From Octopus sinensis (Eukaryota): a stretch of 64,000 bases of DNA. The notes under the pieces are model-generated. The model saw nothing but the letters and a program-made list of their open reading frames with translations, was not told where the DNA came from and did not search any database. Positions 3,691 through 63,614 of the stretch are shown here, in pieces (position 1 is the first letter of the stretch; each line of letters opens with the position of its first letter). Where the stretch lies: positions 10,354,001 to 10,418,000 of the forward strand of contig NC_043002.1 of the NCBI RefSeq assembly GCF_006345805.1, read 5' to 3'. The translations under genes and the position numbers were made by a program.

Positions 3691-4056
3691 TATAGATAAG
3701 TATATTAATGAGTTACTAACATCACTGTTTAGAGGGATGAGCAAAATGACAAATTTCAGATTTATATAAACATTATTACCAAGTGTTTTCTTGCCTTTGT
3801 TCAATGTTTTAATTTTTCTCTTTTTCTTTTCTTTTTATTTCTCTTTTTCTTTGTTGTTTTTTTCCCTATTGTTAAAACCACTGAAACTTGACATTATCCA
3901 TGTAGGAAGGAACGCAGCACAGTCCAGATGAAAGTCTGAATTTTTGAATTTCTGAATATGTTTCATTTTTCCTTTGAACCTGAACACAGACGTACAGTTG
4001 AAATATCGTTCAGTTCCGTAAACAGAGCCAAGCTCCGTTTATTGCAATACGCATTG

Positions 4057-4776
4057 CGCTCTTCTTCTTCTTTCTTCTTCTTCTTCTTCTTCTTCTTCTT
4101 CTTCTTCTTCTTCTTCTTCATCATCTTCTTCTTCTTCTTCATCTTCTTCTCTTCTTCATCTTCTTCTTCATCATCTTCTTCTTCTTCTTCTTCTTTATCT
4201 TCTTCTTCATCTTCTTCTTCTTCTTCTTCTTCTTCATCTTTTTCTTCTCTTCTTCATTCATCTCTTTCTCAATCATCTTCTTCTTATTCTTCTTCTTCTC
4301 TCCTCTTCTTCTTCTATCTTCTTCTCTTCTCTTCTTCTCTTCATCATTTCTTCTTCTTCTTCTTTATCTCATTTCTTCTTTTCTTCTTCTTCTTTTCTTC
4401 CTCTTCTTCTTCATCTTGCTTTCCTCTCTTCTTCTTCTTCTTCTTCTTCTTTCTCTTCTTCTCCCCTCCTCTTCTTCTTCTTCTTCTTCTTTTTTCTTCT
4501 TCTTATTCTTTTCTCTTCTTCTCCTTTCTTCTTCTTCTTCTTCTTCTTCTTCTTCTTCTCCTCCTCCTCCTTCTCTTCTTCTTCTTCTTCTTCTTTTTCT
4601 TCTTCTTCTCTTCTTCTTCTTCTTCTTCTTCTACTACTACTACTACTACTATACTACTACTACTACTACTATACTAATAATAATAATGATGATAGTAATA
4701 ATAATAGTATTATTTATATTATTATTATAATTAATATTAGTAGTAGTAGTAGTAGTAGTAGTAGTGTAGTAGTAGT

Positions 4777-4808
<32 letters not shown>

Positions 4809-4825
4809 TAGTAGTAGTAATAATA

Positions 4826-4878
<53 letters not shown>
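4057..4878. repeat. Compound microsatellite (CTT)n-(TAC)n-(AAT)n-(TAG)n-(AAT)n
   Basis: Directly visible. It explains the poly-F/S/L ORFs at 3958-5067. Confidence 0.97.
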
Positions 4879-6733: not shown

Positions 6734-9700
6734 ATGTAAGAAGAAGGTAAGAAGGAAATACAGAGCTCCGAAATCTATTCACAAACATCGAAAACAAGGA
6801 CACCCTATGGAGCCAAAGATTTACTAACAAAGAATTGGACTATATCCGAGTAAGTAATACGAATTGAAATTTATTACTATTTTCGAAACGAAATGATGTA
6901 TTTTGACTCGATATTATCTCCACCTCTAACACAACACATGTAAACATGCGTGGAACAACACGATCATCCCCGACCTCAAACACCATGTACAAAGGAACTA
7001 CGAAGAAATTAAATGCCACCGATACTATTCAACCCAAGAATAACAATCGAGCGGTACGTACATTAAACCTACAACAAAAAATGTACGAAAAACTACACGT
7101 GCGAAATAATGTGACAACAGAAATAAACGGACCGGTACCCTACGAAAATGACGACCGTCAAAATAATGGGCCGGACGTTGTACCTCATGTCCCGCAATTA
7201 AAACCCAAAAGACGTAAATGGACACGTGAGGAATACATTTCTATCTTACACGCATACTTCACAGCAATGCTCTACCCACAAAATGAAATACAACAAACAA
7301 TACATATAAAATATGGAAGGAAAATAATAGAGATATAGACTTGGATACAGCAATGAACCCTAATAAATTAGCTAACGTACGAAAGATACATTCTCAAGCC
7401 AAAAAAATATCAGAAATAGAAATAGAACATTTAAAAGAAAAAATACACCAGGAAAATGTAGATAGAAGCCACACAACAATGCCCAATAATATAAACACTG
7501 AAACTGTAAAACACGAAGACAAACGCAACATTCCCAACAAGCACGATGTAAACAACGAAGGGGAGCCTAATGATTATGATAATATAAAAAATAAATAATC
7601 AAAGAACTAAAACCACAGAGCTCAAAATGGACCACCGACCATACCTCCCAAGAATCAAAATAAACGCAATAACAACACCAATTATAAACAACATAAACCT
7701 AGCCGTCACTGAACTAGCCACTGAAACAAAAAAAAAGTGATATTACTGAACTAAATGACTTAATATACGCAGCAGCCACTGCAGCCACAAAGAAGCTGGA
7801 TACTCATCCAAACCCGCCCAAACAGGAGTACCACCACCCAAACAAACCCTGTGGATAAATAACATCCAAAACAAAATAAAAAAAATTAGAAAAGACCTGT
7901 CGATTCTTAATGAAATCAGCAAACAAGCAACGCTACTGAGCAACAAAAAGAGAAAAAAATGCTCCGCAAATATAACATCACAGAAAAAGATTTGCCGGAG
8001 ATAAAAGAAAAGCTGAAGCAAGATATCCTTGCCAAAGCTCAAAGGATCCGCCGGTATACGAGAAACGCCAACGCTTCTTTGAACAGAACAAAAAGTTCAA
8101 CTCCGACCCCAAAAAGTTCTACCAAGAAACTGGGCAAAAATAAAAATAGAAGTTCACTGCAGCACCAACGGCAGAAGAAATTGGAAGAATTCTGGAAAGA
8201 AATATGGTCGGCGAACGAACAGCCAAAAAAAAAGGAGTATGAAAATAACAAACTCGGCATCTGAACAACTTTGGACCCCATAACAACTGAAGAGGTCACC
8301 CAGGCACTGCAAAACTAAGCAACTGGAAGGCACCTGGGCATGACAAGATCCCCAACTTCTGGTTGAAATATCTAACAGGAATGCACAAAAAGCTGGCTGA
8401 AAACTTTAAACAGCATACTAGCAGAGCCAGAGACAATGCCTGAATGGCTCACGAAGGGGAAAACCATCTTAATTCCCAAATCAAATGAAACAAAAAACCA
8501 GAAAACTACAGACCAATAACCTGCCTCCCTACTATGTTCAAGGCATTTACTGCAGTGATATCGCAAGGCTGAACAAGCACCTGGACGAAAACAAACTGTT
8601 CCCAGAAGAGCAGAAAGGATGCCGCAAGGGCTCATATATGGCTGTAAAGATCAACTAATGATTAATAAAGCCGTAACTGAAGACAGCACAGAAAGAAGAA
8701 AGGCCTCAGTATGGCCTGGATTGACTACAAAAAGGCGTTTGATAGCATCCCCCACACGGATCCTCGAAACACTAGCCATTAACAAAGTAGCACCAACAAT
8801 CATAAATTCATAGAGCACTCTATGAATAAATGGCAAACAGTCCTACACCTCCAACAAAAGAGGGACTCATGAAAACCAAAGACATCCCCATTAGAAGAGG
8901 AATATTCCAGGGAGACACGCTCTCTCCACTCCTTTTCTGCTTGGCACTGTCACCTCTATCTGATATGCTAAATAGAACTGGATGCGGATATAAATGTTAC
9001 GGCAAAACGATCAGCCACCTTTATATATGGATGACCTAAAACTATACGCTGCAAATGACAAACAGCTGGAAACACTATTAAAGACAGTTCATGGATTTAC
9101 CAAAGAAATAGATGAAATTTGGATTAGAAAAATGCGCCAAGTAACCATGAAAAGAGGAAAACTAGTTAAGAGTAACAACATCACACTAGATAAAAACCAA
9201 TGAAATAAAAGAATTAGACCAAAGCCAAACTTACAAATACTTAGGAATCCATGAACTAGATAAGACACAACACACACAAATGAAAGAGAAAATAAAAAAA
9301 GAATATTATAGACGAGTTAGATCAATACTAAAAACAGAGCTCAATGCTAAAAACAAGATAATAGGTATCAACACTTTAGCTGTCCCAGTTATAAGTTACA
9401 GCTACAATATCCTTAACTGGACACGAAATGAACTGTCCAAAATAGATAGGAAAACAAGAAAAATAATGACAGGATCTAGGATGCATCACCCAAAATCTGA
9501 CATAGAAAGACTATATATACAACGTATAGAAGGTGGGTAGAGGCCTTATACAGCTGGAAAACTACTATAAAATAACCACCATAGGACTGCAAAAATACCT
9601 ACTTCAGAAGGAAGGAAACTGATCCAGATAGCAGCAAAACACGAGCAAAACAAAAAACTGTTCTCAGTATTTAAGGAAGCTGACAAATACAAACAAGAAA

Positions 9701-10675
9701 TCATACCACCTAATAAACACGAAGAAGAAGAGAGATGATGAAGAAACAACAAAAGCTATAAAACAAATGAAATCCAAACTAAAAATAGAACAGCAACGAG
9801 CCATGATAAAACGATGGCAAGAAAAGCCCCTTCATGGTAAATACTGCACTAAACTAAACGCAAAAGAAATAGACAAAGAAAAATCCCAGCAATGGTTGAG
9901 AAGCTCAGGACTCAAAGCAGAAACAGAGGGATTTTTAATTGCAGCACAAGACCAAAGCCTCCCCACCAGAAATTACCAAAAACATGTAATGAAAAGAAAT
10001 ATTACAAGTAACTGCAGAATGTGGAGATGGACAAGAAACAATAAATCATATTATCTCTAGCTGTGCCCAGTCCTGGCTAAGAAGGAATATATTCACAGAC
10101 ATGACAGAGTTGGAACCTACATACATTGGAAGTTATGTCAACATTATGGAATAACAACAGAAAAAAGATGGTATAGGCACACACCAGAAAAGGTCACAGA
10201 AAACGAGAAAGCAACCATACTCTGGGATATGCCGATACACACAGATAGAGAAATTAAGCCCAACAGACCAGATATAGTTGTCAAAGATCATGAAGAAAAA
10301 AAATGCTTTCTAATTGATGTGTCAATACCGGCAGATGACAACGTGTCTCTAAAAGAAATGGAGAAACTCTCAAAATACAAAGATCTGGAAACAGAGGTAA
10401 CTAGAATGTGGAATCTGAAAACAGAAACAATTCCTATCATAGTAGGTGCATTAGGCATGATAACAAATATTCAGACAAATACATAACGAAAACACCAGGA
10501 CTTACAAACACATATAACATACAGAAAATTGGACTACTAGGCACTGCACACATCCTACGCAGAACACTTTCCATACAATAACCATCAGAGCATCACAACA
10601 AATCACAGCACATACCCAAGGCACACAGAGCTGCGCTCGGTAGTGAAGTGGAAGCACGCTATAAAAATAAAACTA

Positions 10676-20772: not shown

Positions 20773-20872
20773 NNNNNNNNNNNNNNNNNNNNNNNNNNNN
20801 NNNNNNNNNNNNNNNNNNNNNNNNNNNNNNNNNNNNNNNNNNNNNNNNNNNNNNNNNNNNNNNNNNNNNNNN
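20773..20872. other. Assembly gap (100 N)
   Basis: Run of n. The true size is unknown, so contiguity across it is not guaranteed. Confidence 1.
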
Positions 20873-23229: not shown

Positions 23230-23634
23230 GCAGGAGTGACTGTGTGGTAAGTAGCTTGCTAACCAACCACATGGTTGCGGGTTCAGTCCCACTGCGTGGC
23301 ATCTTGGGCAAGTGTCTTCTGCTATAGCCCCGGGCCGACCAATGCCTTGTGAGTGGATTTGTAACGAAACTGAAAGAAGCCTTTCGTAATATGTTATATA
23401 TATATATATAATATATATATATGTGTGTGTGTCTGTGTTTGTACCCCTAGCATTGCTTGACAGCCGATGCTGGTGTGTTTACGTCCCCGTCACTTAGCGG
23501 TTCGGCAAAACAGACCGATAGAATAAGTACTGGGCTTACAAAGAATAAGTCCCGGAGTCGATTTGATCGACTAAAGGCGGTGCTCCAGCATGGCCGCAGT
23601 CAAATGACTGAAACAAGTAAAAGTGTAAAAGAGT
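23226..23634 (+). mobile_element. SINE family A, full length
   Basis: GGCGCAGGAGTGACTGTGTGGTAAG head through the GTAAAAGAG tail. Confidence 0.9.
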
Positions 23635-26214: not shown

Positions 26215-26619
26215 TACTTTTTTCAGTCATTTGACGGTGCCCATGCTGGAGCACCGCCTTTAGTCGAGAAAATCGACCCCAGGTCTTATTCTTTGTAAGC
26301 CTAGTACTTATTCTATCGGTTTCTGTTGCCGAACCGCTAAATTACAGGGGCGCAAACACACCAGCATCAGTTGTCAAGCGATGTTGGGGGGGGGGGAACA
26401 AACACAGACACACAAACACATACACACACATACATATATACATATGCATATATACGACGGGCTTCTTTCAGTTTCCGTCTACCAAATCCACTCACAAGGC
26501 TTTGTTCGGCCCGAAGCTATAGTAGAAGACACTTGCCCATGGTGCCACGCAGTGGGACTGAACCCGGAACCTTGTGGTTGGTAAGCAAGCTACTTACCAC
26601 ACAGCCACTCCTACGCCTA
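26215..26619 (-). mobile_element. SINE family A, full length
   Basis: Colinear with 1775-2210. Confidence 0.9.
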
Positions 26620-27132
26620 TTGCTCACATTACGCAAATTTCGTGTAGTATAGGCCTAAGAGTCGACCAAAGAATTTTGAGTGAATTTGGTAGAAAGAAAC
26701 TGCGGAAAGACGCCAAATATGTATGTATGTGTGTGTTTCTCACCCCACAGCTTGTCAACCAGTGTTAATCTGTTTGCGCGCAAGCGGTTCGACAAAAGAA
26801 ACTGATAGAATAAATACCACACTTAAAACTGAATAATAATTGGTGTCGATTTGCTCAACTAAACCATTCAACATGACCGCGATCATGTCAAATATTAAAC
26901 AAGTAGAAATTAGAAGAATTTCAATTTTAATTCTGCCCTGAAAAAAAAAACAACAACAAAGAAAAAAAACAGATGCTTTTCAAATTGAAAGAAAAGAAGA
27001 ATGATTGTAACGAGTTTTCAGTTGAAGCATTTAACCGGACGTTAGAGCTGGAACTGAAGAGGGTGTGTGTTACCACGACAACTGAACAGAGATATCGCGA
27101 AAATTTGAATTAAATAGCTCAAAAATATATAC

Positions 27133-27281
27133 TCACTCTACACATTTTCCGCCTGATCTTGAAGTGATTTGTACGCGATTACTTCCGGTGATATTGCACC
27201 TGTGAACCCAGCAGACACCATCTTCCATGCCCGACCAAACTTTATCTTTCTTGACACAATTGCCATTATTCTTCCGACAAT
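27133..27281 (-). CDS. Coding exon 4 of secreted cysteine-rich repeat protein
   Basis: Acceptor TTTTCTTTTCAAAAACAG, phase 1. Encodes (Y)CRKNNGNCVKKDKVWSGMEDGVCWVHRCNITGSNRVQITSRSGGKCV, with the same C/W spacing as exon 3. Ends either at TGA 27135-27133 or at a GA|GTGAGT donor (exon end 27137). Confidence 0.85.
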
Positions 27282-27440
27282 CTGTTTTTGAAAAGAAAAC
27301 CAACAATATATTGGCTATTCTATCAAATAATTATCTTTCACATAATTATGGCTAAAAAAGTTGGCACAAGGCCGGCGATATAGATACACAGATACATACG
27401 TACATATGTACATACACTCGCATACACACATATATATGCG

Positions 27441-27514
<74 letters not shown>

Positions 27515-27775
27515 TGATTATATATATATATCTACACATTTCTATATATTCATATGTATGCAGATAGATATGTATGTATGTATGTTTATGTGTGTATATA
27601 TATATATAGAAGTATGTATGTGTGTATATACAGGGAGAGTTTACGAAAAAAACAAAAGCCGAAGACAGGTGGTGTACAAAAAAACAGATTTTAGTATGTG
27701 TGTATATATATATATATATAGATGTGTGTGTGTATGTGTAAATATATAAATTATATATATTTGTATGTATGTATG

Positions 27776-27831
<56 letters not shown>

Positions 27832-27840
27832 AATATTATT

Positions 27841-27983
27841 ATTAATATCAGGAAAACAATATTAGAAAATTCTTCAGAAAGATATATACGTATGTAAAAT
27901 AATTGTTGTATTAATAGAACAATTATTTTACACACGTATATATCTTTCTGAAGAATTTTCTAATATTGATTCCTGATATTAAT
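27841..27983. repeat. Hairpin, ~66 bp arms, short loop, next to (TA)n
   Basis: ATTAATATCAGG...GAAAGATATATACGTATGTAAAATAATTGTT vs AACAATTATTTTACACACGTATATATCTTTC...CCTGATATTAAT. Confidence 0.9.
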
Positions 27984-28110
27984 ATAACATATTATAAAAT
28001 ATATAATAATCGCTCGTATCAATTACATAAATACTTTGATACAATAGAGTACTCAATACAAATTCAGTATCATAATATTCTCATTGAATATATTAACTAA
28101 AGATTTATAT

Positions 28111-28189
<79 letters not shown>

Positions 28190-28475
28190 GTGTGTGTGTG
28201 TATATGCATACATATTTGTATATGTATATTTAGCACCCAGTAATATGAAGAAGTAATTCCTTGAGCTGCGTGCCGAAGCGAACTGTCGAACAGGCAAACC
28301 ACATAAACTGAATATGTTCGGTCGATGATAAATATTGTGTGTGTATGTATCTGTCTGTGTATCTGTGTCTATGTGTGCATGTGTGCGTGCGTGTCTGCTG
28401 AGGTGCGTAATCTCAGACTAAATCAAACCTTGAAGTTCGAAATCCGTACACACACTGATGTGAATTGATGTTACA

Positions 28476-28775
28476 TCTTTATATATAAAAGAGAGGTTGT
28501 GTGCTGTCCGTCTCCTACAATTTAGATTCCTAACTACTCCCACGTTTTGCGGTGCAGTTTAATCAAAACCGGGTATCTTATAGTCGTGATTCATATCGAG
28601 CCCTTCTGGGTATTAGCGCGCGTCTACGATGAGTCTACGATTAAAAAAAAATTTACCATCATTTATTTTCCCACTTTTAATGCATTTTTTTGCTATTTTT
28701 TGTCTATAACTCTCTAAAAATGCTTATATAGTTATTTCCCTTACAAACCCGAGCAACGCCGGGTAATACTGCTAG
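28476..28775 (+). mobile_element. Non-autonomous Helitron (300 bp)
   Basis: 5' TC (A|TCTTTATATATAAAAG), subterminal hairpin ACCCG-AGCAACGC-CGGGT, 3' CTAG|T. Inserted between A and T with no TSD. Confidence 0.85.
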
Positions 28776-29206
28776 TTTAGATATAAATATAGTTTAAGGA
28801 CACTCACAAAGCTCATTCTTTGAAATGTATCAGTCGACTTATACTTCAAGTTAGACATTGAAGTATGAGAGTCGTTTATTTTATGTATCTTTATCCTTAG
28901 GACTCATAAGGCCGGTTACCCAGCTTTCATGGCGTTTAAGCGACCAAAATCTCCGTGAACAGGGCGCTTGTCCGTTACTGGCTTGAATACCAGTAATTTT
29001 GGAGGTGAAGCATCCAGTCAATTTCCTCAACTCTAGGATTCGACTGGTCCCTTAACTTTCGACCCCGAAGGGTTGAAAAGTAAATGCTGTTAAACATTCC
29101 GGACGATTTGCTATGGATTCTACCTGCTCACCAGAATCGTGATAGCGCCTACCAAAATGTTATGCGGTATTTAAATACCTTTCTTTTCGTATTGATATCA
29201 AACACT

Positions 29207-29582
29207 GGAAGCACTCCGTCGGTTACGACGACGAGGGTTCCGGTTGATCCGAATCAACGGAACAGCCTGCTCGTGAAATTAACGTATAAGTGGCTGAGCA
29301 CTCCACAGACACGTGTACCCTTAACGTAGTTCTCGGGGATATTCAGCGTTACACAGAGAGTGACAAGGCCGGCCCCTTGAAATACAGGTACAACAGAAAC
29401 AGGAAGTAAGAGTAAGTTGTGGGGAAAGAGTACAACAGGGATCACCACCATCCCCTGCCGGAGCCTCGTGGAGCTTTAGGTGTTTTCGCTCAATAAAACT
29501 CACAACGCCCGGTCTGGGAATCGAAACCGCGATCCTATGACCGCAAGTCCGCTGCCCTAACCACTGGGCCATTGCGCCTCCA
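29207..29582 (-). mobile_element. SINE family C, full length
   Basis: Head GGAGGCGCAATGGCCCAGTGGTTAGGGCAGCGG...GGTTTCGATTCCC (A/B boxes). Confidence 0.9.
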
Positions 29583-29847
29583 CTATCAAACACTACTATG
29601 TTGAACATTACCTTTCGTCAATCGTGTTCAATCAAGGGAGAAGCCATTGTCTACTGAGGTTGATGTAGCTGTCTATGAGTTGTGATGCGTCAATGTCACA
29701 GTTAACACAGGCAGATGGTTAATAATGAACAGTTGCCGAATTTGGCCTATCGCATTCAAAAGAACGCCAATATAATATTCGGTGTGATTTTGCTGTTTTA
29801 AGACATGTAGTGAAGAAAGGAAACCAAAAATTTATTTGCCAACTTAC

Positions 29848-29985
29848 ACACAGATTTTGCATATACTTTCCATTGAGTATCACTCATTCGGTGACACGTT
29901 TTCAAGGCACACATTATTTCCGTCTTTTCCATCCATGTATCTTCGTATTTGCGGCACTTACCCTCGATTAAACATCCATCGCATT
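29848..29985 (-). CDS. Coding exon 3 of secreted cysteine-rich repeat protein
   Basis: Acceptor ATCTTTATTCAG, donor GTAAGT, 138 nt, phase 1-1. Encodes (K)CDGCLIEGKCRKYEDTWMEKTEIMCALKTCHRMSDTQWKVYAKSV. Confidence 0.85.
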
Positions 29986-30311
29986 CTGAATAAAGATACA
30001 TACATTATAATTATACCTACTAAGCATTATTAGATATTTTACAAGGCAGATTTATTATAAACTAGAAGAAAGTAAATTTGGTTCCAATACTATCCGAGAT
30101 CATATCCTTTGCTTCCTTCTAATTCATATATGAAATTCAGTCGGATCATTAACCTCTTTTCCCAGTCCTGTTTTGATAAAACAAATACTCGAGAGGAGTA
30201 TTTTGATACCAATTTAAGGAACTGATACGGTCCTCTGCAAAGGTTTCTCCTACACACGGTCGTGGTTTGGGCACGCCAAAAGGTTTTGGTGTGAACTGGC
30301 AAAGAACATAC

Positions 30312-30368
30312 TGTACAAGAAACTCCGGTATTCAGGTTTTGGTACAGCTGTTGTTTGCTGAGTAATAT
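30312..30368 (-). CDS. Coding exon 2 of secreted cysteine-rich repeat protein
   Basis: Acceptor TTTTAGCTTTCACAG, donor GTATGT, 57 nt, phase 1-1. Encodes (D)ITQQTTAVPKPEYRSFLY. Confidence 0.75.
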
Positions 30369-30390
30369 CTGTGAAAGCTAAAATAATTAA

Positions 30391-30430
<40 letters not shown>

Positions 30431-30446
30431 ATAATAATAATAATAA

Positions 30447-30690
30447 TAGTGCTCATGGGAACTGCCCATATCCTACGCAGAATACTTTCTATGTAATCTC
30501 AAGTTTTAAAACAAACATAATTTTCTTATGGTTCCTTAAACATTCTCTAGAACAACGCTATGTACAAAACCAAATGTATGGCACCCTAGGCATAACACCA
30601 ACATCAGCTTTCAACTTGCTGTCTCTTGAGGTCTCTGGGTGAGACTTGGAGCCAACTTGTACAAATGTAAAGCAAAAGTTAAACATAAAA
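30447..30690 (+). mobile_element. 3' end of R4/Dong-like LINE (lineage B), copy 3, shorter
   Basis: VLMGTAHILRRILSM* plus the same 3' UTR as 5586-5990, flanked by (AAT)n. Confidence 0.85.
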
Positions 30691-30694
30691 TAAT

Positions 30695-30779
<85 letters not shown>

Positions 30780-30781
<2 letters not shown>

Positions 30782-31319
30782 CCCTGATGCAGTACCAGGC
30801 AGAAGCTCTCATGGCTTCTGATCTTAACTGATTGGAAGTGTTATCATGTACATTAAAGGTGGTCTACTGCAAATATTCTGCTCATTATCCTAGATTTGCT
30901 TGTCAGTTGTTTGACCTTAACCTGGTGGGCAAGTTCCTTAGTGGCTGATGATATATGCATCTCTGATCGCAAGCGGAAGTGGCGGGGGAACATCATAGCT
31001 ATGTGTTGAGAGGGATTCTTTGGGGGTTTAAATAATTCAGCTTTAGAAACATGGGTGTTTCGTTCAACATCCTTAAACAAACCTTATTCAGGAACCTTTT
31101 GAACAGATGGGTTACTCGATCTGAAGAAAATTCTAACTGGGCCACACCTGCAAGGTCACGTGCTGTTTATCTTGATATGAGTTCACCATGCCGCGCACGT
31201 ATGGTTGTGATGCATGTGCCTGGTGTACCCTTATCAGACAGGTAGTCATGATGGGTACACCGTGCTCGATTATTTAACCCCAATGTCGTTTTGATGGCGT
31301 GAACTGCTGTCTCACTCAA
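30780..31319. repeat. Unclassified element X, copy 2
   Basis: Colinear with 10708-11258, preceded by (AAT)n. Confidence 0.85.
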
Positions 31320-31449
31320 GAACTTATAATAACATAGAGTTCAAAGATATAATGGAAAAGGAAATGAAAGAGAAACTGAGGGTGGAGTATTTCCGAAGAC
31401 TGAGGTTCGTGTTGCGCTCCATATTCACTGGATTGAATAAAATCGAAGC

Positions 31450-31868
31450 ATAGGCGCAGGAGTGGCTGTGTGGTAAGTAGCTTGCTAACCAACCACATGG
31501 TCCCGGGTTCAGTCCCACTGCGTGGCATCTTGGGCAAGTGTCTTCTGCTATAGCCCCGGGCCGACCAATGCCTTGTAAGTGGATTTGGTAGACGGAAACT
31601 GAAAGAAGTCTGTCGTATATATGTATATATATATATGTGTGTGTGTATATGTTTGTGTGTCTGTGTTTGTCCCCCTAGCATTGCTTGACAACCGATGCTG
31701 GTGTGTTTACGTCCCCGTTACTTAGCGGTTCGGCAAAACATACCGATAGAATAAGTACTGGGCTTACAAAGAATAAGTCCCGGAGTCGATTTGCTCGACT
31801 AAAGGCGGTGCTCCAGCATGGCCGCAGTCAAATGACTGAAACAAGTAAAATAGTAAAAGAGTAAAGAG
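31450..31868 (+). mobile_element. SINE family A inserted in LINE lineage D
   Basis: Full head-to-tail copy interrupting the ...NKIEA|INTW... reading. Confidence 0.9.
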
Positions 31869-32101
31869 AGTTAATACGTGGGTGATAGCATCACTTCGGT
31901 TTTGAGTAGGAGAATTATAAAATGGCAAAAGTGAGGAGTGAAGAAAATGAATACCAAGATCAGAAAAATGTTGACAGTAGGTGGAGCGTTCCACCCTAAG
32001 ATAACACCGTTAGGCTGTACTTGTCTACAAGAAAGTGGGGGGGGGGTGATTAGTTGCCAGGACTGTATCGAAGCAAAGCCTAGCGTGGTATATAAAATTT
32101 T

Positions 32102-32333
32102 AAGGCGGCGAGCTGGCAGAAACGTTAGCACGCCGGGCGAAATGCTTAGCGGTATTTCGTCTGCGTTACGTTGTGAGTTCAAATTCCGCCGAGGTCGACT
32201 TTGCCTTTCATCCTTTCGGGGTCGATAAATTAAGTACCAGTTACGCACTGGTGTCGATGTAATCGACTTAATACCTATGTCTGTCCTCGTTTGTCCGCTC
32301 TGTGTTTAGCCCCTTGTGGGTAATAAAGAAATA
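32102..32333 (+). mobile_element. SINE family B with 12-bp target-site duplication
   Basis: GGTATATAAAAT at 32087-32098 and 32334-32345. Confidence 0.9.
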
Positions 32334-33292
32334 GGTATATAAAATATCATGGAGTCACTGTTAAAACACACGAAGGAGGCCGACTTCATCAATCAACACA
32401 GAAAATTGTGTAACGAAAGAAAAATTTAAACAAGAACAAAAAAGCAGAAAGGTAAACGCATGGAATGAAAAGAAAATGTACGGTCAGTTTGCAAGTGATG
32501 TGAACTTTAAAACAGATACAGAGGACCGGTGGCTATGGATGAGGAGTGACCTGAAGATAGAGTCTCATATGCACAGCTCAGGCACAAGCGTTAAGGGCGA
32601 ACTATGTGAAGTGCAGAATAGACAACACTACCGATAGCGACAAATGCAGAATGTGTGGTGAGAGGGATGAAACGGGTATGGTGCATCGTTAGCGAATGAT
32701 CGAAATTGGCAGAACGCGAATACAATTGACGCCATGACAATGTGGCAAGAATGGTCCATTCGGAGCTATGTGGTAATCTCGACCTACAAAGAGCCAAGAT
32801 GTGGCATGAGCAAACTCCAGGAATCACCGAAAATGAGAATTGCAAAATCCTGTGGGATGCAACAAACCAGTGCAATCACCTGACCAGTCATCGGATACTG
32901 GACAGTGTTGTGGTCAATAAAAAAGGAAGAACATTATGATAATCGGCGTAGCTTGCCCCGGTGACAAAAAAGATCAATGTGAAAGAAGAAAAAAAATAAA
33001 CAACTATGACGATTTGAAGTGGGAAATACGAAGGTTGTGGTCAAGGAAGAGAGCAGACGTGATAACAATAGTAACTGATGCTCTTGGAAGTATCAGCACT
33101 CTATTACCAACATGAATGAAAAAGATTGGTGCAAGTGTGAAGGTAGAACACCAGCAAAAATCAGCATTGCTTGTAACTGCAAGAATTTTTCGCAGGGTTC
33201 TTGAAGCATGAGCAGTAAACAAGTGTGAGTTTAGTCTAATGGCTGTGGACAGCTGACACTTTCCATCATACTCAGCAAAATAAGTTTAATAC

Positions 33293-33376
<84 letters not shown>

Positions 33377-33870
33377 TATAAGAAGAAGAAGAAGGAGAAG
33401 AAGAAGAAGAAGAAGAAGAAAAGAAGAAGAAGAAGACGACGACGACGAAGAAGAAGAAGAAGAAAAGAAGAAGAAGAAGAAGAAGAAGAAGAAGAAGACG
33501 AAGACGAAGAAGAAGAAGAAGAAGAAGAAGAAGACGAAGACGAAGAAGAAGAAGAAGAAGAGAAGGAGAAGAAGAAGAAGAAGAAGGAGAAGAAGAAGAA
33601 GAAGAAGAAGACGACGACGACGAAGAAGAAGAAGAAGAAAAGAAGAAGAAGAAGAAGAAGAAGACGAAGACGAAGAAGAAGAAGAAGAAGAAGAAGAAGA
33701 AGAAGAAGAAGAAGACGAAGAAGAAGAAGAAGAAGAAGAAGAAGAAGAAGGAGAAGAAGAAGAAGACGAAGAAGAAGAAGAAGAAGAAGGAGAAGAAGAA
33801 GGAGAAGAAGAAGAAGAAGAAGAAGAAGAAGAAGAAGAAGAAGAAGAAGAAGAAGAAGAAGAAGAAGAAA
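33293..33870. repeat. (AAT)n followed by long (GAA/GAC/GGA)n microsatellite
   Basis: Directly visible. It explains the poly-S/E/K/R ORFs. Confidence 0.97.
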
Positions 33871-34054
33871 ACGAGTATCGCTGAAATTTGATGTTACACA
33901 CCGTATTGGTCGGTATGTAAGACACACTATATTTTTAAATATATCAAACTATTGCTCAGCATTATATGCTGCCGTATTACGGAACGGAAGACCAGCTGTT
34001 ATATACTAACGAACCTGATGAGCATAGGTATGCTATCTATAATAATTCTTACAA

Positions 34055-34278
34055 GAGGCGGCGAGCTGACAGAAACGTTAGCACGCCGGGCGAAATGCTT
34101 AGCGGTATTTCGTCTGCCGTTACGTTCAAATTCCGCCGAGGTCGACTTTGCCTTTCATCCTTTCGGGGTCGATAAATAAAGTACCAGTTTCGCACTGGAG
34201 TCGATCTAATCGACTTAATCCTTTGTCTGTCCTTGTTTGTCCCCTCTGTGTTTAACCCCTTGTGGGTAGTAAAGAAAT
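34055..34278 (+). mobile_element. SINE family B
   Basis: Complete head and body. Confidence 0.9.
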
Positions 34279-34759
34279 ATATAATAATTCTTACTGATGA
34301 CAAAATATTGAAAGCCATATCTTCACGTTCGGTTGGTACAAACTTATGAAAAATTGGAACGCTACGTCAGCAGATATTTACAGATGTCACAACATCCGAT
34401 TATATGTCCTCTCCCGGTATACGTAGCCCACATCTGAGGGGTTTTACATTATTTAATGATTGTGTTGGCTTTGTGAAACATTTTATTAAAATATCTAAAT
34501 GAAAATTGACATATCCACTTGAAATAAGTGGATGACAACAAAGCCATAGCTATGGCGCACCTCCCTTGTGGCTGATCGTAGTTATGTAAAACATCACAGT
34601 CAGAAATACGTGTTTCACATCCTTTATCGCAATTCCTTTGACCAAAATTTAAACGAGCATGCAGTTTGTCTAACAGAAGATTAAGTACTTCACTCATACT
34701 GTATATTGATGATAAATTTATAGTTTCGTATTTTATTTCAGTATGCCATCATAATCTTT

Positions 34760-35116
34760 TCTACTCTAGTCGATTAGATTGACCGCAGTGCGCAACTGGT
34801 ACTTAATTTTTCGACCCCGAAAAGATGAAAAGCAAAGTCGACCATGGCGGAATTTGAACTCAGGACGTAAAGACAGACGAAATACCTATTTTTTTACTGC
34901 CCACAAGGGGCTACACACAGAGGGGTCAGACAAGGACAGACAAACGGATTAAGTCGATTATATCGACCCCAGTGCGTAACTGGTACTTATTTAATTGACC
35001 CCGAAAGGATGAAAGGCAAGTCAACCTCGGCGGAATTTGAACTCAGAACATAAAGACAGACGAAATACCGCTAAACATTTCGCTCGGCTGCTACCGATTC
35101 TACCGGCACGCCGTCT
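34760..35116 (-). mobile_element. SINE family B, head plus body plus partial second body
   Basis: Junction ...AAAAAAATA|GGTATTTCGTC on the minus strand at ~34876-34895. Confidence 0.85.
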
Positions 35117-35472
35117 TAGTAGACTATCATATTATTGTACGTACATGCACAGAATCATATATTTTCCCCACGGTTAAATCATAAAGAAAATTGAGAAATG
35201 GTCATATTAATACAATTAGATTATAAATAGACACATAGTTACTTCAATTCCATTGCACGTATGCATAGTAATATATCTGAGAAATAATTATCGGAGTAAA
35301 ATAGTGTGTAAATTAATGTTTTATGACTTACTATACGAATTTTAACATAAGTACTTCTCAAACACTGGCCTCTGGGTACTTAACCAATCTCCAAGATATA
35401 ATAGTTATATATGCTTCAAATTACACAAATGCTTTAATAAAGGAACGTTACATTGGGCACAGTGATAGAGAC

Positions 35473-35600
35473 CATGTACTGTAAAGGAACTCTTGCACAG
35501 TGAATAGAAACATATAAATAGTGGACAACATGCTTGCAACATACGGCAAGATTGGTTAACATAGAAATAGATGAAAGTATTGTAAGCAAACTATACATTA
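35473..35600. repeat. ~128 bp direct repeat, partner at 36514-36642
   Basis: CCATGTACTGTAAAG(G/A)AACT...GCAAAC(T/A)ATA in both copies, roughly 88% identical by eye. Confidence 0.85.
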
Positions 35601-36965
35601 TGAGACATTTAGGTGTGTCTATACAATAAAACCTCAACAAGGATTTCTCACATAGTAATCCCGCCTGTATTTTATATATACCAAGTTGATGTATCAACAA
35701 CGAGAACATTATATGAAAAAGGGTTAACGGCTAAGTGAGAAATGAAAATAGATCATTGATATAAACTAAAGCGTGACCCTAGAAAAACAAATGATAGTAT
35801 AGTATTAGTTATGAGCGTAGGTATTCATGAAAGTCACTAGGCAACTATTAGGGAAATTGAATATCAAGCATACCAAAATATTGGAATAATCGATCGGATA
35901 CATTCGAATATGCCTATGCATGTGTGTGTGTGTACGTATGCGTCAGTGTACATAGGTTGGTACAAATGTGTGAACACGAATATACGTAATTATGTGTGTG
36001 AGTGTATGCAAACAAGTATTGGTGTGTGTGTGTGATTATAGGATAAGTATCGCTAGAAAGAGGTGCATGTCTAAAAATGAATGCGTGTATAAACGAATGT
36101 AATTAATTGCTTTACTAGACGAATTGATCAATGTTGACGGGTCCAATATTAATGTGTAGCCTTTGATGCTCAGATATAAAATTTGACTATCAAGCAAGTG
36201 GCCATTTTTGCGACTGCCTTGGAATACAGGATTGTCTAAGTCTAATTACGGCGATCATTTATTGAAGGTGACTGAGTGGGATATTTTCTTGTAACAACAA
36301 AGAGAATTCTCGGGGTGAAACGCAGTCAATTATCTAATCAAATTCCTCTTACTGCCCCTCCACCTTATTTACCAAATTTCTTCCTGTATTTGTAGTGTAT
36401 TTATATGATTAGTCAGAACACCACGCCTAGGATTCGTATCGAGGAGCTTACTGGCAAAATCGCAATCCCAGTCAACATATTAGATTTTACGAAAAGCAAT
36501 TTGGTCAACTTTGCCATGTACTGTAAAGAAACTGTTGCACAGTGAATAGAAACATATTAATAGTGGACGACATGCTTACAACATACGGCAAGATTGGTTA
36601 AAATAGAAATACATGAAACTATTGTAAGCAAACAATATATTAAACTAATTTGCTTACTCCATTCTTACGTATTTTGCACAGAACCAAACACACACATACA
36701 TATACTTACATGCATACAGACAGATACACACACACATTAATGCGTGTATATTTGTGTGTGTGTGTACGTGCGCGTACGCTTGTATGTGTTTATGTGTGTG
36801 TATACACATTATCAATTTATAGTAATGGGAATATCGATGAGTGTAACACAATTTCAAAAAAAAAATACGAAAAGACTGATTGATTAAAAAGATGAAAGAA
36901 TTAGCGCTCATGCAATTTTCAAATGTTTGATTATTCAGTATATTTATATCGGATTAGAAACTTAC

Positions 36966-37038
36966 CTTTCTCCTCTTCCGGCTCGAGAGCAGTTACTGCT
37001 GTCAAGAACAACAGGTAAAATGGAAATAGCCGTGTCAT
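36966..37038 (-). CDS. Coding exon 1 (start codon, signal peptide) of secreted cysteine-rich repeat protein
   Basis: Acceptor CCATTTGTACTTTCAG 6 nt before the ATG at 37038. Encodes MTRLFPFYLLFLTAVTALEPEEEK (n-region R, hydrophobic core, AVTA cleavage-like site). Phase 1 donor G|GTAAGT. Confidence 0.8.
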
Positions 37039-37249
37039 ATTGATCTGAAAGTACAAATGGAATTGGAAGTGATCGAACTTAGTGGTTCATTTCTAATTCA
37101 GAGAAAAAAGGCAAGCAGCACAAATAAATAAACGTGTGTATATTTTGATCGTGCGCGTGTGTACAAAAGTGCATCTGCATATGTGTGTGTGTGTATATGT
37201 ACAAGTTTAATAACATACCCCAATTATATAAATACATATACGTATGTTG

Positions 37250-38043: not shown

Positions 38044-39410
<1,367 letters not shown>

Positions 39411-45885: not shown

Positions 45886-46253
45886 TACTCTTTTACTCTT
45901 TTACTTGTTTCAGTCATTTGACTGCGGCCATGCTGGAGCACCACCTTTTAGTACTTATTCTATCGGTCTCTTTTTGCCGAACCGCTAAGTGACGGGGACC
46001 TAAACACACCAGCATCGGTTGTCAAGCAATGCTAGGGGGACAAACACAGACACACAAACACACGCATACATATATATATACATATATACGACAGGCTTCT
46101 TTCAGTTTCCGTCTACCAAATCCACTCACAAGGCATTGGTCAGCCCGGGGCTATAGCAGAAGACACTTTCCCAAGATGCCACGCAGTGGGACTGAACCCG
46201 CAACCGTGTGGTTGGTTAGCAAGCTACTTACCACACAGCCACTCCTGCGCCTA
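45886..46253 (-). mobile_element. SINE family A with internal deletion
   Basis: Colinear with 1775-2210 but missing ~45 nt after GCACC(A/G)CCTTT. Confidence 0.9.
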
Positions 46254-46270
46254 TATATAAAGATATATAC

Positions 46271-46312
<42 letters not shown>

Positions 46313-46339
46313 ATATATATATATATATACATAATATAT

Positions 46340-47740
46340 ATTCTAGTTGCCATGTCACCCGAAGACACTTTTTATCGGGAGAATTAGTACTCCTTTTTTC
46401 TTTTGACTTGCGCGAGAGAGTTTGAATTACTTTGTGTGTATTTGATTTCTTTTTGTTGCTTTTGTGTCGGGTGGGAATGATTAGGCTTGGGGGAGGGTGG
46501 GTCTGAGAGGGTGTGGGTGGGGTTGGGGTGGGTCGGGCTTTATAGTTGGAATCCCTTGCCTTCTTCGTCTGTTTTACAGTGACCTTTTCCCACTTATCCT
46601 CCGTTGCTGCTACTTCCTCCTCCTTTCTGGAACTCTTCGACCTCTTTTCTTTTTCCTCCTCCATATCTTTTATTCTCTTCTCGTCTGCATTTTTGGTTTC
46701 TGAAAGACTGTCCGCTCTAATGTGGCCCTTCTGGCCACATTTAAAGCAGCGTGGGACTCTGCCCTTCATCCTGACCGTCGTTATAACTTCACTCATGATT
46801 ATTGGCTCTGTGATATTTTCCAGAGTCTCGGCTGATCCTTGAACAATCATGTTTAGTGTTAGTCCCTTCCATATCATGTTTTCCCTTTTTGTGGCCTGGA
46901 GCACCATTATACTGTCCTCGTTACCAAAGAGAACAGCGTCTGTTACCCAGGCCACATTGATTTCCGGCGGTATTCCTTCTTCACTTATTCTTGTTGCTCG
47001 TAGTCCTCGGTAAGTGGGTAAGAAGCACCATATCCTCACTTCTGATAGATGTCGCCGCTTGACTGAACAGGTCAGCAGGCAAGAAAAGAAAAAGATCGGC
47101 GACAGGAAAGTATGTTGTGACCAAAGGGAGAGAGAAGAGAGAGAAAACGAGTAGCGAGGGGCAGAGAGTGGGGAAGAGGAAAGGGTCGTCCAAAAAGAAG
47201 CACCACTCCCTCACATCTGATAGACGTCGCCGTTTGTTTCCTTGCTGATACCGCGTCCTTGAACCTCACCTCCACTATTCCAAACATCGAACCTTTTACC
47301 AGGTACACGATATCTCTCCAGATCGGACTCAGCGCCTTTTCCTCCTGTTCCGTAGTTACAATGTCAATTTTATCTTTACTTATCGAAAAGGTTCGGTACA
47401 TTATTGTTCCTTTCCTTGTTTCTTGCGGGGTGGGCACAGCTTTACCCCAAAACCATCCCGGCTCATTAAAGCTTTATGCCTTCCGAATTCTTCGTTATTT
47501 ATTTCCTTCTCCTGGCATTTTGCCACGTTGGCAAAATTCCTCTTTTCCATTTTTCGTTTATTGTCCATCTTCCAGATAGCCTCCAGTAATTCTTCTTCCG
47601 CCGACGATATGTCTGAGAAGATTTAGTCTTCTACAGACATGCTTTTACCAAGCTATCTCTCCTCTGCGAGAAGAGAAAGCAGAAACAAACAAACCGTAAA
47701 CACAAAAACCGTTAAAATCAGCACGAAGCAATCCTCCCAA
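46340..47740 (-). mobile_element. ORF1 (gag-like) region of a Tx1/L1-group LINE, disrupted
   Basis: ...VRMKGRVPRCFKCGQKGHIRADS (CX2CX4HX4C knuckle with the last C lost), followed by a K/E-rich region. Upstream KGTIMYRTF...FGIVEVRF. Start ATG near 47640, with an early stop. Confidence 0.7.
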
Positions 47741-58039: not shown

Positions 58040-59139
58040 TATATTGGCCAACAGTGCTCAACTGGTACTAATTTTATCGATTCGACAGAATGAAAGGCAA
58101 AGTAGACAACTTAGTAATCATGTTACAATTTGCCTACGTTCCCATACTGAACTATCTCCACATTCAATACGGCAAACATACATTTTAGGATTGTTATATA
58201 TACGAACGCTATTAAAACATAAGTCTCTATGGTATCCTAGAAAGTACATGATAGGTAAAATGATAGATAGATAGATAGATAGATAGACAGACAAACAGAT
58301 GGATATATGTATATTGATAGATAGATAGATACATAGATAGATGGTAGATATATAGCTAGCTAGCTAGATAGATGAATAGATGGACATGCACTCAGACAAA
58401 GGCAAATATTTACATACAAAAACAGAAAATACAGTTAGTTTAGATATTGTACTTCAGTTTATTTTCTTTACCAATAAAATCAAATCAAGATACTACTAGA
58501 TATCTTCATTTTAGACCCGTTTCTGAATTTATGCATTAAATAAATAAAGATTGATGAATAGATTCAATTTTTTAGAACTGTGTCTTAGCTATGATTCAAA
58601 CCATTAAAGCAAATATTTCCTACACATTTCTTAAAAAATAAAAACTGATAACGGTTTACTTACGCATGCGAAAAGGAGAGAGCTGCGAAGAAACTTGAAA
58701 GAATGACGAATGTGAAAACGATGCGTATTTATTTAATGTAACACCAGCGATGCTGGTAAACAGCTGGTGACAATAAATCACAGTTTTTATTATCCCATTA
58801 TTGAATGGTATAATAACGACAAGTCATCAAAAACAAGCTGACAACTAAAGGTTTCTTTTATGACTCGTAGAGAATTGGAAACAATCGTTTCTACTTCTGC
58901 ACCTGAATTAAATAAATAATTAGTTGTATGAATAGTTGCATCATGCTTTAATTTGGTTCTCTGTGTATTAAACACTTCTTTCGCTCACTTTTCGCTTTGT
59001 ATTTTTCTGCTGTTATAAATGACTAAAATACGTGAAGTGTTGTTTTTCTCTAAAAGAAAAAAAGTTTGCACCCATCCGCTCAACATAATGGATAATATCG
59101 TAGACAGACAGTCAGACAAACAGATAGATAGATAGAGAG

Positions 59140-60795: not shown

Positions 60796-61110
60796 CAGGA
60801 TGCGTCAGTTTTTTCTTTGTTTTTTTTTTTGGTGGGGAGGGGGTTAGTGCATCACCTTGAAGAATTCTAAATTTCTCATTTATTTTTAAGTTTAGTTTTC
60901 GTATAAATAATGTCGGATATCATGTTGATACAGGAAATAAAAAAGGCACGCTGTAATCGTCATAAAAGCGTAGCATAGCAACGCAGAGATAGCTCGCTTC
61001 CGATAAGTTGTCCGATCTGTCTTTGTCAAATTTCGAAAGATGCTGGAAGCTGGTGACGGGAATACAACATCAGAAGCTAAAAGCATCAGCAGCTAAATGC
61101 GGCATCTATA
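60796..61110 (+). mobile_element. Tc1/mariner (maT-like) 5' fragment
   Basis: MLIQEIK-RHAVIVIKA*HSNAEIARFR*VVRSVFVKFRK resembles the N-terminal HTH of DD37D transposases. A CAGG-type end follows TA. Confidence 0.55.
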
Positions 61111-61157
61111 ATAATAATAATAATAATAATAGTAATAATAATAATAATGATAATAAT

Positions 61158-63614
61158 AAAAAAAAGGAGTATCAGAATAACAAACTCGGCATCTGGACAA
61201 CTTTGGACCCCCATAACAACTGAAGAGGTCACCCAGGCACTGCAAAGACTAAGCAACTGGAAGGCACCTGGGCATGACAAGATCCCCAACTTCTGGTTGA
61301 AATATCTAACAGGAATGCACAAAAAGCTGGCTGAAAACTTTAACAACGTACTAGCAGAGCCAGAGACAATGCCTGAATGGCTCACGAAGGGGAAAACCAT
61401 CTTAATTCCCAAATCAAATGAAACAGAAAAACCAGAAAACTACACACCAATAACCTGCCTCCCTACTATGTTCAAGGCATTTACTGCAGTGATATCACAA
61501 AGGCTGAACAAGCACCTGGACGAAAACAAACTGTTCCCAGAAGAGCAGAAAGGATGCCGCAAAGGCTCATATGGCTGTAAAGATCAACTAATGATTAATA
61601 AAGCCATAACTGATGACAGCCACAGAAAGAAGAAAGGCCTCAGTATGGCCTAAATTGACTACAAAAAGGCGTTTGATAGCATCCCCCACACATGGATCCT
61701 CGAAGCACTAGCCATTAACAAGGTAGCACCAACAATCATAAAATTCATAGAGCACTCTATGAATAAATGGCAAACAGTCCTACACCTCCAAACAAAAGAG
61801 GGACTCATGAAAACCAAAGACATCCCCATTAGAAGAGGAATATTCCAGGGAGACACGCTCTCTCCACTCCTTTTCTGCTTGGCACTGTCACCTCTCTCTG
61901 ATATGCTAAATAGAACTGGATGCCGATATAAATGTTACGGCAAAACGATCAGCCACCTTTTATATATGGATGGCCTAAAACTATACGCTGCAAATGACAA
62001 ACAGCTGGAAACACTATTAAAGACAGTTCATGGATTTACCAAAGAAATAGATATGAAATTTGGATTAGAAAAATGCGACAAAGTAACCATGAAAAGAGGA
62101 AAACTAGTTAAGAGTAACAACATCACACTAGATAAAACCAATGAAATAAAAGAATTAGACCAAAGCCAAACTTACAAATACTTAGGAATCCATGAACTAG
62201 ATAAGACCACAACACACACAAATGAAAGAGAAAATAAAAAAAGAATATTATAGACGAGTTAGATCAATACTAAAACAGAGCTCAATGCTAAAAACAAGAT
62301 AATAGGTATCAACACTTTAGCTGTCCCAGTTATAAGTTACAGCTACAATATCCTTAACTAGACACGAAATGAACTGACCAAAATAGATAGGAAAACAAGA
62401 AAAATACTGACAGGATCTAGGATGCATCACCCAAAATCTGACATAGAAAGACTATATATACAACGTATAGAAGGTGGTAGAGGCCTTATACAGCTGGAAA
62501 ACTACTATAAAATAACCACCATAGGACTGCAAAAATATCTACTTCAGAAGGAAGGAAAACTGATCCAGATAGCGGCAAAACACGAGCAAAACAAAAAACT
62601 GTTCTCAGTATTAAGGAAGCTGACAAATACAAACAAGAAATCATACCACCTAATATATGAAGAAGAAGAAGAAGGAGATGAAGAAACAACAAAAGCTATA
62701 AAACAAATGAAATCCAAACTAAAAATAGAACAGCAACGAACCATGATAAAACGATGGCAAGAAAAGCCCCTTCATGGTAAATACTGCACTAAACTAAACG
62801 CAAAAGAATAGACAAAAAAATCCCAGCAATGGCTGAGAAGCTCAGGACTCAAAGCAGAAACAGAGGGATTTTTAATTGCAGCACAAGACCAAAGCCTCCC
62901 CACCAGAAATTACCAAAAACATGTAATGAAAAGAAATATTACAAGTAACTGCAGAATATGTGGAGATGGACAAGAAACAATAAATCCTATTATCTCTAGC
63001 TGCCCAGTCTTGGCTAAGAAGGAATATATTCACAGACATGACAGAGTTGGAACCTACATACATTGGAAGCTATGCCAACATTATGGAATAACAACAGAAA
63101 AAAGATGGTATAGGCACACACCAGAAAAGGTCACAGAAAACGAGAAAGCAACCATACTCTGGGATATGCCGATACACACAGATAGAGAAATTAAGGCCAA
63201 CAGACCAGATATAGTTGTCAGAGATCATGAAGAAAAATGCTTTCTAATTGATGTATCAATACCGGCAGATGACAACGTGTCTCTAAAAGAAATGGAGAAA
63301 CTCTCAAAATACAAAGACCTGGAAATAGAGGTAACTAGAATGTGGAATCTGAAAACAGAAACAATTCTATCATAGTAGGTGCATTAGGCATGATAAAAAA
63401 ATATTCAGACAAATACATAAGAAAAAACACAGGACTTACAAACACATATAACATACAGAAAATTGCCCTACTAGGCACTGCACACATCCTACGCAGAACA
63501 CTTTCCATACAGTAACCATCAGAGCATCACAACAAATCACAGCACATACCCAAGGCACATAGAGCTGTCCTCGGTAGTGAAGTGAAAGCACGTTATAAAA
63601 ATAAAGCTACTGAA
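61158..63614 (+). mobile_element. 5'-truncated copy of R4/Dong-like LINE lineage A
   Basis: Colinear and very similar (high-90s % by eye) to 8227-10680, covering RT, CCHC and REL. (AAT)n on both sides. Confidence 0.93.

Follow-up and report, generated by a model that had tools for sequence, protein, structure and literature searches.

In fibronectin, each type I (FnI) module is encoded by a single exon flanked by phase-1 introns, and the module itself holds four cysteine residues, with a C-x-C motif in strand D and disulfides in a 1-3/2-4 arrangement. Pairs of these modules take up extended peptides as an additional strand at the edge of their sheet. To our knowledge, FnI as defined by sequence is essentially a chordate domain, and the host considered here, Octopus sinensis, is a mollusc. 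The present analysis concerns the gene LOC118763691, which resides on the minus strand of a 64,000-nt stretch of octopus DNA (contig C6, NC_043002.1, positions 10354001-10418000; referred to as the window, within which all positions below are counted unless they are given in Mb). There is little doubt that this gene consists of three coding exons and encodes a secreted precursor with two cysteine/tryptophan modules in tandem, and according to predicted models each module likely adopts an FnI-like fold. The identity as a whole, in which gene model, architecture and fold class are combined, we regard as probable.

Splicing of the minus-strand segments 37038-36966, 29985-29848 and 27281-27133 yields, letter for letter, the RefSeq protein XP_036359366.1, a 119-amino-acid sequence named "uncharacterized protein LOC118763691 [Octopus sinensis]" (P0001). 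An earlier annotation made from the letters alone, the original prediction, had proposed a hidden gene of four exons with a product of 138 amino acids. All four of its peptide segments were found on the minus strand where it had placed them, and its intron lengths (6597, 326 and 2566 nt), GT/AG sites and phase 1 were exactly as claimed. Its claim that this is a genuine gene of several exons, with a small, disulfide-rich and presumably secreted product, is likewise supported. However, the gene is not hidden, as it has already been annotated by NCBI, and the supported product is the 119-residue protein, which equals the 138-residue one without the predicted exon 2 (30312-30368), exon 1 being joined straight to exon 3. 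Exons 1, 3 and 4 of the original prediction are therefore numbered here as coding exons 1, 2 and 3; that they represent more than chance is indicated by the RefSeq identity and, for the two module exons, by conserved paralogues and orthologues.

Coding exon 1 (36966-37038) starts with the ATG at 37038, encodes the signal peptide and an acidic linker (MTRLFPFYLLFLTAVTALEPEEEK plus the first base of the next codon) and ends at the donor GAGAAAG/GTAAGT; the codon formed at the junction with the module-1 exon is G/AA (Glu). It is followed by intron 1 (29986-36965; 6980 nt, GTAAGT...TTCAG, phase 1), which contains the predicted exon 2, an (AGT)n microsatellite and low-complexity sequence. Coding exon 2 (29848-29985) carries module 1, is in phase 1 at both ends and is bounded by ttcAG/ and T/GTAAGT. 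Intron 2 (27282-29847; 2566 nt, GTAAGT...AACAG, phase 1) leads to the last coding exon (27133-27281), which starts after aacAG/, carries module 2 and ends with the TGA stop at 27133-27135. All of these features are on the minus strand. Sites are canonical GT/AG at all introns, and the introns around the modules are all in phase 1, as had been predicted. Six nucleotides upstream of the ATG an acceptor-like tttcag is present (37045-37050), and the O. bimaculoides isoforms X1-X3 have alternative 5' parts which are all joined just before the equivalent 'VNM'. As the isoforms diverge exactly where this acceptor-like sequence precedes the start codon, the two observations suggest a non-coding exon upstream of coding exon 1.

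Inspection by hand and by hydropathy, that is, by simple rules, agreed with the original prediction in revealing a signal-peptide-like N-terminus: a basic n-region (MTR) precedes a hydrophobic core of 14 residues (L4-A17) and V-T-A/L at positions -3/-1. The region is conserved in relatives and has a low predicted local distance difference test (pLDDT) score in the structural model. We infer that the product of LOC118763691 is secreted after cleavage of approximately residues 1-17, with a predicted mature protein of about 102 amino acids, about 11.8 kDa and an isoelectric point of about 8. Module 1 reads C26-x2-C29-x5-C35-x6-W42-x7-C50-x4-C55 and continues with strand E (WKVYAKSV), and module 2 reads C72-x6-C79-x6-W86-x7-C94-x4-C99...C117. 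The spacing C-x5/6-C-x6-W-x7-C-x4-C, which had been noticed in both module exons, is present and is conserved in the family, and an alignment by hhalign put the two modules in register on C/W/C/C over 39 columns (E 1e-3), in line with the view that the two exons are repeats of one module. Two predicted isoforms of O. bimaculoides (P0011 and P0012) skip the module-1 exon in frame; the allocation of one module to each phase-1 exon would account both for this skipping and for the duplication of the module. An N-I-T sequon that had also been listed is indeed present, but it is not conserved in the family.

Structural modeling was based on shallow alignments of six and ten sequences, respectively, with members shared between the two. 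The AlphaFold2 model of P0001, built on six family sequences, was confident over residues 30-119 (block pLDDT 86-94) and all-beta. In each half, three longer strands come after a short hairpin, which gives the order of an A-B hairpin and a C-D-E sheet, and both W42 and W86 fall within the predicted third strand (strand C) of their module. In a Foldseek search of the PDB the top 11 matches to this model were FnI module pairs (probability 0.99-1.0), aligned over 88-95 columns, approximately the whole mature domain, at 15-20% identity. The 8-9FnI pair (3GXE, 3EJH) was matched at E 1e-4 to 7e-4 and the 2-3FnI pair (3CAL) with a template-modeling (TM) score of 0.56 by target; the 4-5FnI pair (1FBR) was matched as well. 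Similarly, the top ten Foldseek matches to the AlphaFold2 model of P0016, a member of subfamily B that is about 25% identical to P0001, were FnI pairs. The resemblance to FnI- or VWC-like folds which the original prediction had loosely noted is thus recovered for two family members. P0016 also bears on the possibility that the octopus proteins are three-finger proteins of the Ly6/uPAR type: the automatic UniRef name of this entry (A0A0L8H3R2) is 'UPAR/Ly6 domain-containing protein', and ten cysteines, a mature length of about 90-100 residues and an all-beta structure would suit such an assignment. However, Pfam UPAR_LY6 gave no match at E≤10 for either P0016 or the window protein, the P0016 model matches FnI pairs first with no three-finger structure among the top 50, and the domain lacks a C-terminal CCxxxxCN motif and is an internal repeat over two exons, so that we attach next to no credence to this alternative.

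A number of points weigh against an FnI-like identity of the gene product. The fold rests on predicted models from the small, member-sharing alignments, with moderate TM scores against FnI pairs (0.43-0.56 by target) and a root mean square deviation of 4-6 Å. A link to FnI at the level of sequence was found neither in Pfam nor in PDB sequences: hmmscan against Pfam-A at E≤10 returned 0 families for the window protein and eight relatives, fn1, VWC, SVWC, PSP94 and UPAR_LY6 included, and no family exceeded its threshold for the 138- and 119-residue forms and nine relatives. Searches of the PDB sequences by phmmer with the protein, and by hmmsearch with a profile of the module, retrieved no FnI chain and only chance matches. 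The spacing in strand D is C-x4-C and not the C-x-C of FnI, and strand B holds an extra cysteine. The similarity between modules 1 and 2 is itself weak, with an hhalign probability of 22% at the E-value given above. As to the gene, look-ups of transcript contigs for P0001 and P0007 retrieved no encoding contig on record, and we found no paper that cites the LOC numbers, the XP or UniProt accessions or the SRA run of the gene or its relatives. Weighed together, the models would describe the domain as a tandem pair of FnI-like finger modules for which membership in FnI as defined by sequence fails; the statement of the original prediction that no named family can be assigned agrees with the Pfam result.

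A comparison with the FnI pairs of human fibronectin (3EJH, 3GXE, 3CAL, 1FBR) reveals predicted modules of about 45 residues with an A-B hairpin, a C-D-E sheet, a tryptophan in strand C and stabilization by disulfides, and two such modules in tandem with one per exon and phase-1 introns. In contrast to FnI, where the order is C...W...C-x-C...C, the octopus modules follow C-x5/6-C-x6-W-x7-C-x4-C with no detectable sequence similarity, and there are five cysteines per module-equivalent in addition to N- and C-terminal cysteines, which may staple the pair. A further difference is that fibronectin is a large mosaic protein of which the FnI modules are a part, whereas the octopus protein is free-standing with a domain of 92 residues.

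Size and cysteine content would also fit a protein similar to beta-microseminoprotein (MSMB, PSP94), a family to which the contact pheromone of squid egg capsules is related. Human MSMB is characterized by a CC doublet and a C-x2-C-x-C motif. The octopus proteins share with MSMB the size class of about 10 kDa, the ten cysteines, a presumed secretion and rapid evolution, but their cysteine pattern has neither the doublet nor the C-x2-C-x-C motif, Pfam PSP94 (PF05825) gave no match at E≤10, and no MSMB structure was among the top 50 fold matches; such a relationship therefore appears very unlikely, even though a cephalopod precedent for a pheromone of the MSMB type is cited in PMC4500399. The SepECP egg-case proteins, with more than 50 cysteines, were considered as well and are unrelated.

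Like the VWC and SVWC (Vago) proteins, the octopus proteins are small, presumably secreted, cysteine-rich and multi-copy products of an invertebrate. VWC holds ten cysteines in one domain, and its N-terminal subdomain is FnI-like. We considered whether the gene product is an SVWC/Vago-like or VWC-type protein with a cytokine-like or pattern-recognition function. For P0019, a distant repeat protein, the N-terminal, FnI-like half of Pfam SVWC (PF15430) scored 17.8 bits, below the cut-off of 27; this was the only hint from sequence. In contrast, no octopus member matched SVWC (PF15430) or VWC (PF00093) at E≤10, the motifs of the C-terminal VWC subdomain are missing, and no VWC structure was found among the top 50 fold matches of P0001 and P0016. 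SVWC proteins have been described as small, secreted, multi-copy and immune-related in arthropods, and the octopus family evolves fast, but SVWC is defined by a single domain of some 66 residues whose 8 cysteines form 4 disulfides (PMC13115929), as opposed to ten cysteines in two modules of about 45 residues on separate exons. We consider this possibility improbable. None of the alternatives weighed in this study is favored by the tests.

The window contains one gene of this family. The genome (2.72 Gb, 13,516 contigs) was searched exon by exon and with a consensus-like module peptide, which revealed at least nine genes of subfamily A, all on contig C6 and in three clusters (9.80-10.38, 96.65-96.93 and 101.03-101.09 Mb); subfamily B is represented by P0027 at 9.956-9.976 Mb and further copies at 9.93 and 10.05 Mb. 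Orthologues are present in O. bimaculoides. The structure of two module exons is common to all members. Across 18 aligned sequences there is little or no variation at the ten cysteines and W86; within subfamily A, W42 and two glycines are fixed as well, and subfamily B has one additional pair of cysteines. A maximum-likelihood tree contains four well-supported one-to-one pairs of O. sinensis and O. bimaculoides genes, and the gene in the window falls into an unresolved group with the copies at 9.80, 9.87 and 96.71 Mb and O. bimaculoides LOC106872057 and LOC128248056. The 9.80 Mb copy (L004, L005) has in-frame stops just upstream of its match to the module-1 exon and a TAA right after the last cysteine; as the upstream stops lie before the acceptor, this copy is not necessarily a pseudogene.

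An exhaustive search of 1.84 billion cluster representatives with a hidden Markov model profile matched 15 proteins, none of which has a Pfam domain or a functional name. Ten of them, at E<1e-10, are all from Octopus, and three further Octopus proteins, at about 1e-5, belong to subfamily B, so that all close relatives are from Octopus and the lineage restriction which had been proposed holds. The more distant matches are a hypothetical protein of the scallop Mizuhopecten yessoensis (KP79_PYT13650/LOC110446345; E 3.6e-6) and a 322-residue protein from transcript-like contigs (SRR10507665, ERZ272278xx; E 1.8e-4). Both consist of tandem copies of this module, whose Cys/Trp scaffold aligns in register, and share the motif C-R-x-x-[ND]-G-x-C-x3-G-x-x-W...C-x4-C with the octopus family. 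Unlike the two-module octopus proteins, these chains hold 4-7 modules, some of which lack one cysteine in an alternating fashion, and their similarity to the octopus family is weak (hhalign probability 20-44%). Judged by sequence, this is a clustered family that is so far confined to Octopus and has distant relatives in the form of tandem arrays, one of them in a bivalve. In the seven-module proteins P0019 (L030:103-1071) and P0023 (L028:110-1087), modules with the strand-B cysteine and without the second strand-D cysteine alternate with modules of the reverse constitution. For P0019 this alternating loss implies a super-repeat of two modules, in which disulfides probably connect neighboring modules.

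Pairwise ratios of nonsynonymous to synonymous substitution (dN/dS), another analysis that had been suggested at the outset, were determined according to Nei-Gojobori over 91 scaffold-aligned codons and ranged from 0.34 to 1.88; many pairs are near or above 1 even with the invariant scaffold included, and the gene in the window yields 0.34-0.35 against its nearest copies. The nucleotide identity of the exons is 55-77%, which is no higher than the 72-77% of an intronic block described below. The mean entropy is 1.51 outside the strands and 1.18 within them, and variability peaks at positions 31, 41, 43, 56, 74, 81, 87-88, 102, 104 and 116. The pattern corresponds to a constant disulfide scaffold whose surface changes either freely or adaptively. 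The small sample of 91 codons, the simple counting method and the partial saturation of dS speak against reading more into these ratios, and for the small codon sample and the saturation in particular positive selection is only suggested.

At the 3' end of the gene, a GTGAGT donor (27131-27136, minus strand; context GTAGA/GTGAGT) overlaps the stop codon. A GT[AG]AGT donor is found 8-11 nt after the last cysteine in every paralogue (loci L005, L007, L008, L010, L011, L012, L015 and L019) and is retained even in copies whose stop precedes or overlaps it. P0002, P0003, P0004, P0005, P0010 and P0013 use this donor to add a variable and often basic tail exon, which in P0003 lies 10.6 kb downstream; the tails of the relatives contain basic runs (RQKR, KKRR, RRNRR) resembling proprotein-convertase sites. 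No homologue of a tail exon was found in the window with the protein tails of P0002, P0003, P0005, P0010 and P0013 or with the DNA of P0003 exon 5. Since the TGA overlaps the donor and no known tail has a homologue here, the supported C-terminus is the RefSeq end (...KCVE), although an isoform with a tail may arise by way of an unrelated exon. A candidate polyadenylation signal, ATTAAA, is located 201 nt past the stop (26926-26931, minus strand; a pattern match only).

The same observations raise the question whether the copy in the window is a decaying or non-functional duplicate that has lost its tail exon: its stop overlaps the conserved donor, no tail-exon homologue is present in the window, and in the tree recent duplicates form a polytomy that includes the gene and the 9.80 Mb copy, which has in-frame stops near its exons. 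However, the three exons are open, the splice sites are intact, and the ten cysteines, both tryptophans and both glycines are kept. Other clearly conserved members (P0006 and the copies at 101.03, 101.08 and 9.80 Mb) also end right after the last cysteine, and dN/dS against the nearest copies is 0.34-0.35. Decay of this copy is thus quite unlikely.

The exon 2 of the original prediction (30312-30368, minus strand; 19 amino acids, DITQQTTAVPKPEYRSFLY) is unsupported as an exon. In favor of the four-exon, 138-residue isoform as the true or major product are the open frame, the YAG acceptor (cacAG/) with a 73% pyrimidine tract, the A/GTATGT donor, the preservation of phase 1 and the conservation of its surroundings among paralogues. 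However, the identity of 72-77% around this exon continues equally into the flanking intron. The donor, AC/AGTATGT in the window, reads TTTATGC in paralogues, the acceptor AG is not kept, and frame-breaking indels occur there, so that donor, acceptor and frame are lost in five of the five aligned paralogues. Neither the RefSeq model nor any of the relatives and isoforms, O. bimaculoides X1-X3 among them, contains the exon, and the 138-residue form is absent from a collection of 15 billion proteins. In addition, the 6980-nt intron contains 267 stop-free, frame-preserving AG..GT intervals of 30-240 nt, 11 of which have sites of a quality equal to or better than those of exon 2. From the sites and frame that are not conserved, the absence from all models and the 267 comparable intervals we conclude that this exon is what chance supplies in a long intron; at best, it is a candidate for a cassette specific to the window. 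That the 138-residue protein is the true or major product is accordingly very unlikely, and the case illustrates that long introns may, by chance, contain intervals that look like credible additional exons. An origin of exon 2 from a dispersed repeat was also considered and rejected, as matches to its DNA are confined to paralogous loci, where they precede the module-1 exon in the corresponding position.

The conservation around exon 2 belongs to an intronic block of about 160 nt (30200-30360, minus strand), which is conserved at 72-77% in the same position upstream of the module-1 exon in at least five paralogues (L021-L025). The block is conserved as well as the coding exons or better and occurs nowhere else in the genome. 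A structured RNA was considered for this block and rejected, given that neither a match to an Rfam family nor covariation was detected. The block is non-coding and may represent a regulatory element, a decayed ancestral exon or an old insertion.

Based on these data, we propose that LOC118763691 gives rise to a precursor of 119 amino acids with a cleavable signal peptide (approximately residues 1-17), a short acidic linker and an all-beta domain of 92 residues with ten cysteines. The domain would consist of two FnI-like fingers, each with an A-B hairpin on a C-D-E sheet and the tryptophan in strand C, and each encoded by its own exon between phase-1 introns. The gene is part of a clustered, Octopus-expanded family with a fixed Cys/Trp/Gly scaffold, in which the rate of change at surface positions is similar to that at silent sites. 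With a mass of about 11.8 kDa, the mature protein would be secreted and soluble and might engage an extracellular partner via exposed sheet edges and loops, by analogy to the addition of a beta-strand by FnI pairs, complexes of which with collagen and bacterial adhesins are among the structures matched by Foldseek. The family would then diversify specificities, be it in immune recognition or signaling, in chemical communication or in matrix binding.

A recognition role is suggested by the fixed scaffold and varied surface, as expected of proteins that meet diverse or changing partners. Its derivation from analogy only counts against it, and a secreted binding or recognition role is a tentative proposal to which we give somewhat less than even chances. 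It might further be speculated that FnI-type fingers are not a chordate invention, and that molluscs possess a divergent branch undetectable by sequence, in the form of long arrays (the scallop and transcript proteins) and of free two-finger ligands in octopus for recognition or signaling, e.g., in immunity or contact chemoreception; this broader scenario is doubtful at present. As the gene is already part of the RefSeq catalogue, what is new is a structural identity for a family without domain annotation, name or literature. If confirmed, it would open a way into one of the numerous secreted families that are specific to cephalopod lineages, bring lophotrochozoans into the range of the FnI-like finger, at any rate as a fold, and provide a compact disulfide scaffold whose surfaces nature has diversified.

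The remainder of the window, in which no further host gene was seen, is rich in microsatellites and low-complexity runs. A gap of 100 N at 20773-20872 lies outside the gene. Degraded open reading frames of non-LTR (long terminal repeat) retrotransposons, similar to reverse transcriptase, are located at 38097-39260, 61081-63375 and 9632-10486 on the plus strand and at 46251-47210 on the minus strand; one element is represented by copies at both 9632-10486 and 62362-63375. Purine- or pyrimidine-rich low-complexity tracts at 33231-34009, within intron 1, and at 3940-4831 would encode poly-K/R/E or poly-F/L/S in all frames. A region on the minus strand at 58658-58781, 21.6 kb upstream of exon 1 and on the same strand, weakly resembles the N-terminal extension of isoform X2 of O. 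bimaculoides LOC106872057 (E 0.001 within the window). The match could reflect an alternative, homologous 5' exon or else a repeat that both have in common. Finally, a tRNA-like B-box motif (GGTTCCGGGTTCAGTCCCACTGCGTGGCACC, with up to two mismatches; 0 copies expected by chance) occurs at 2131-2161, 23273-23303, 26541-26571, 31499-31529 and 46175-46205. These copies probably represent a tRNA-derived short interspersed element, one of them being situated about 560 nt downstream of the stop codon of the gene and another inside intron 1.

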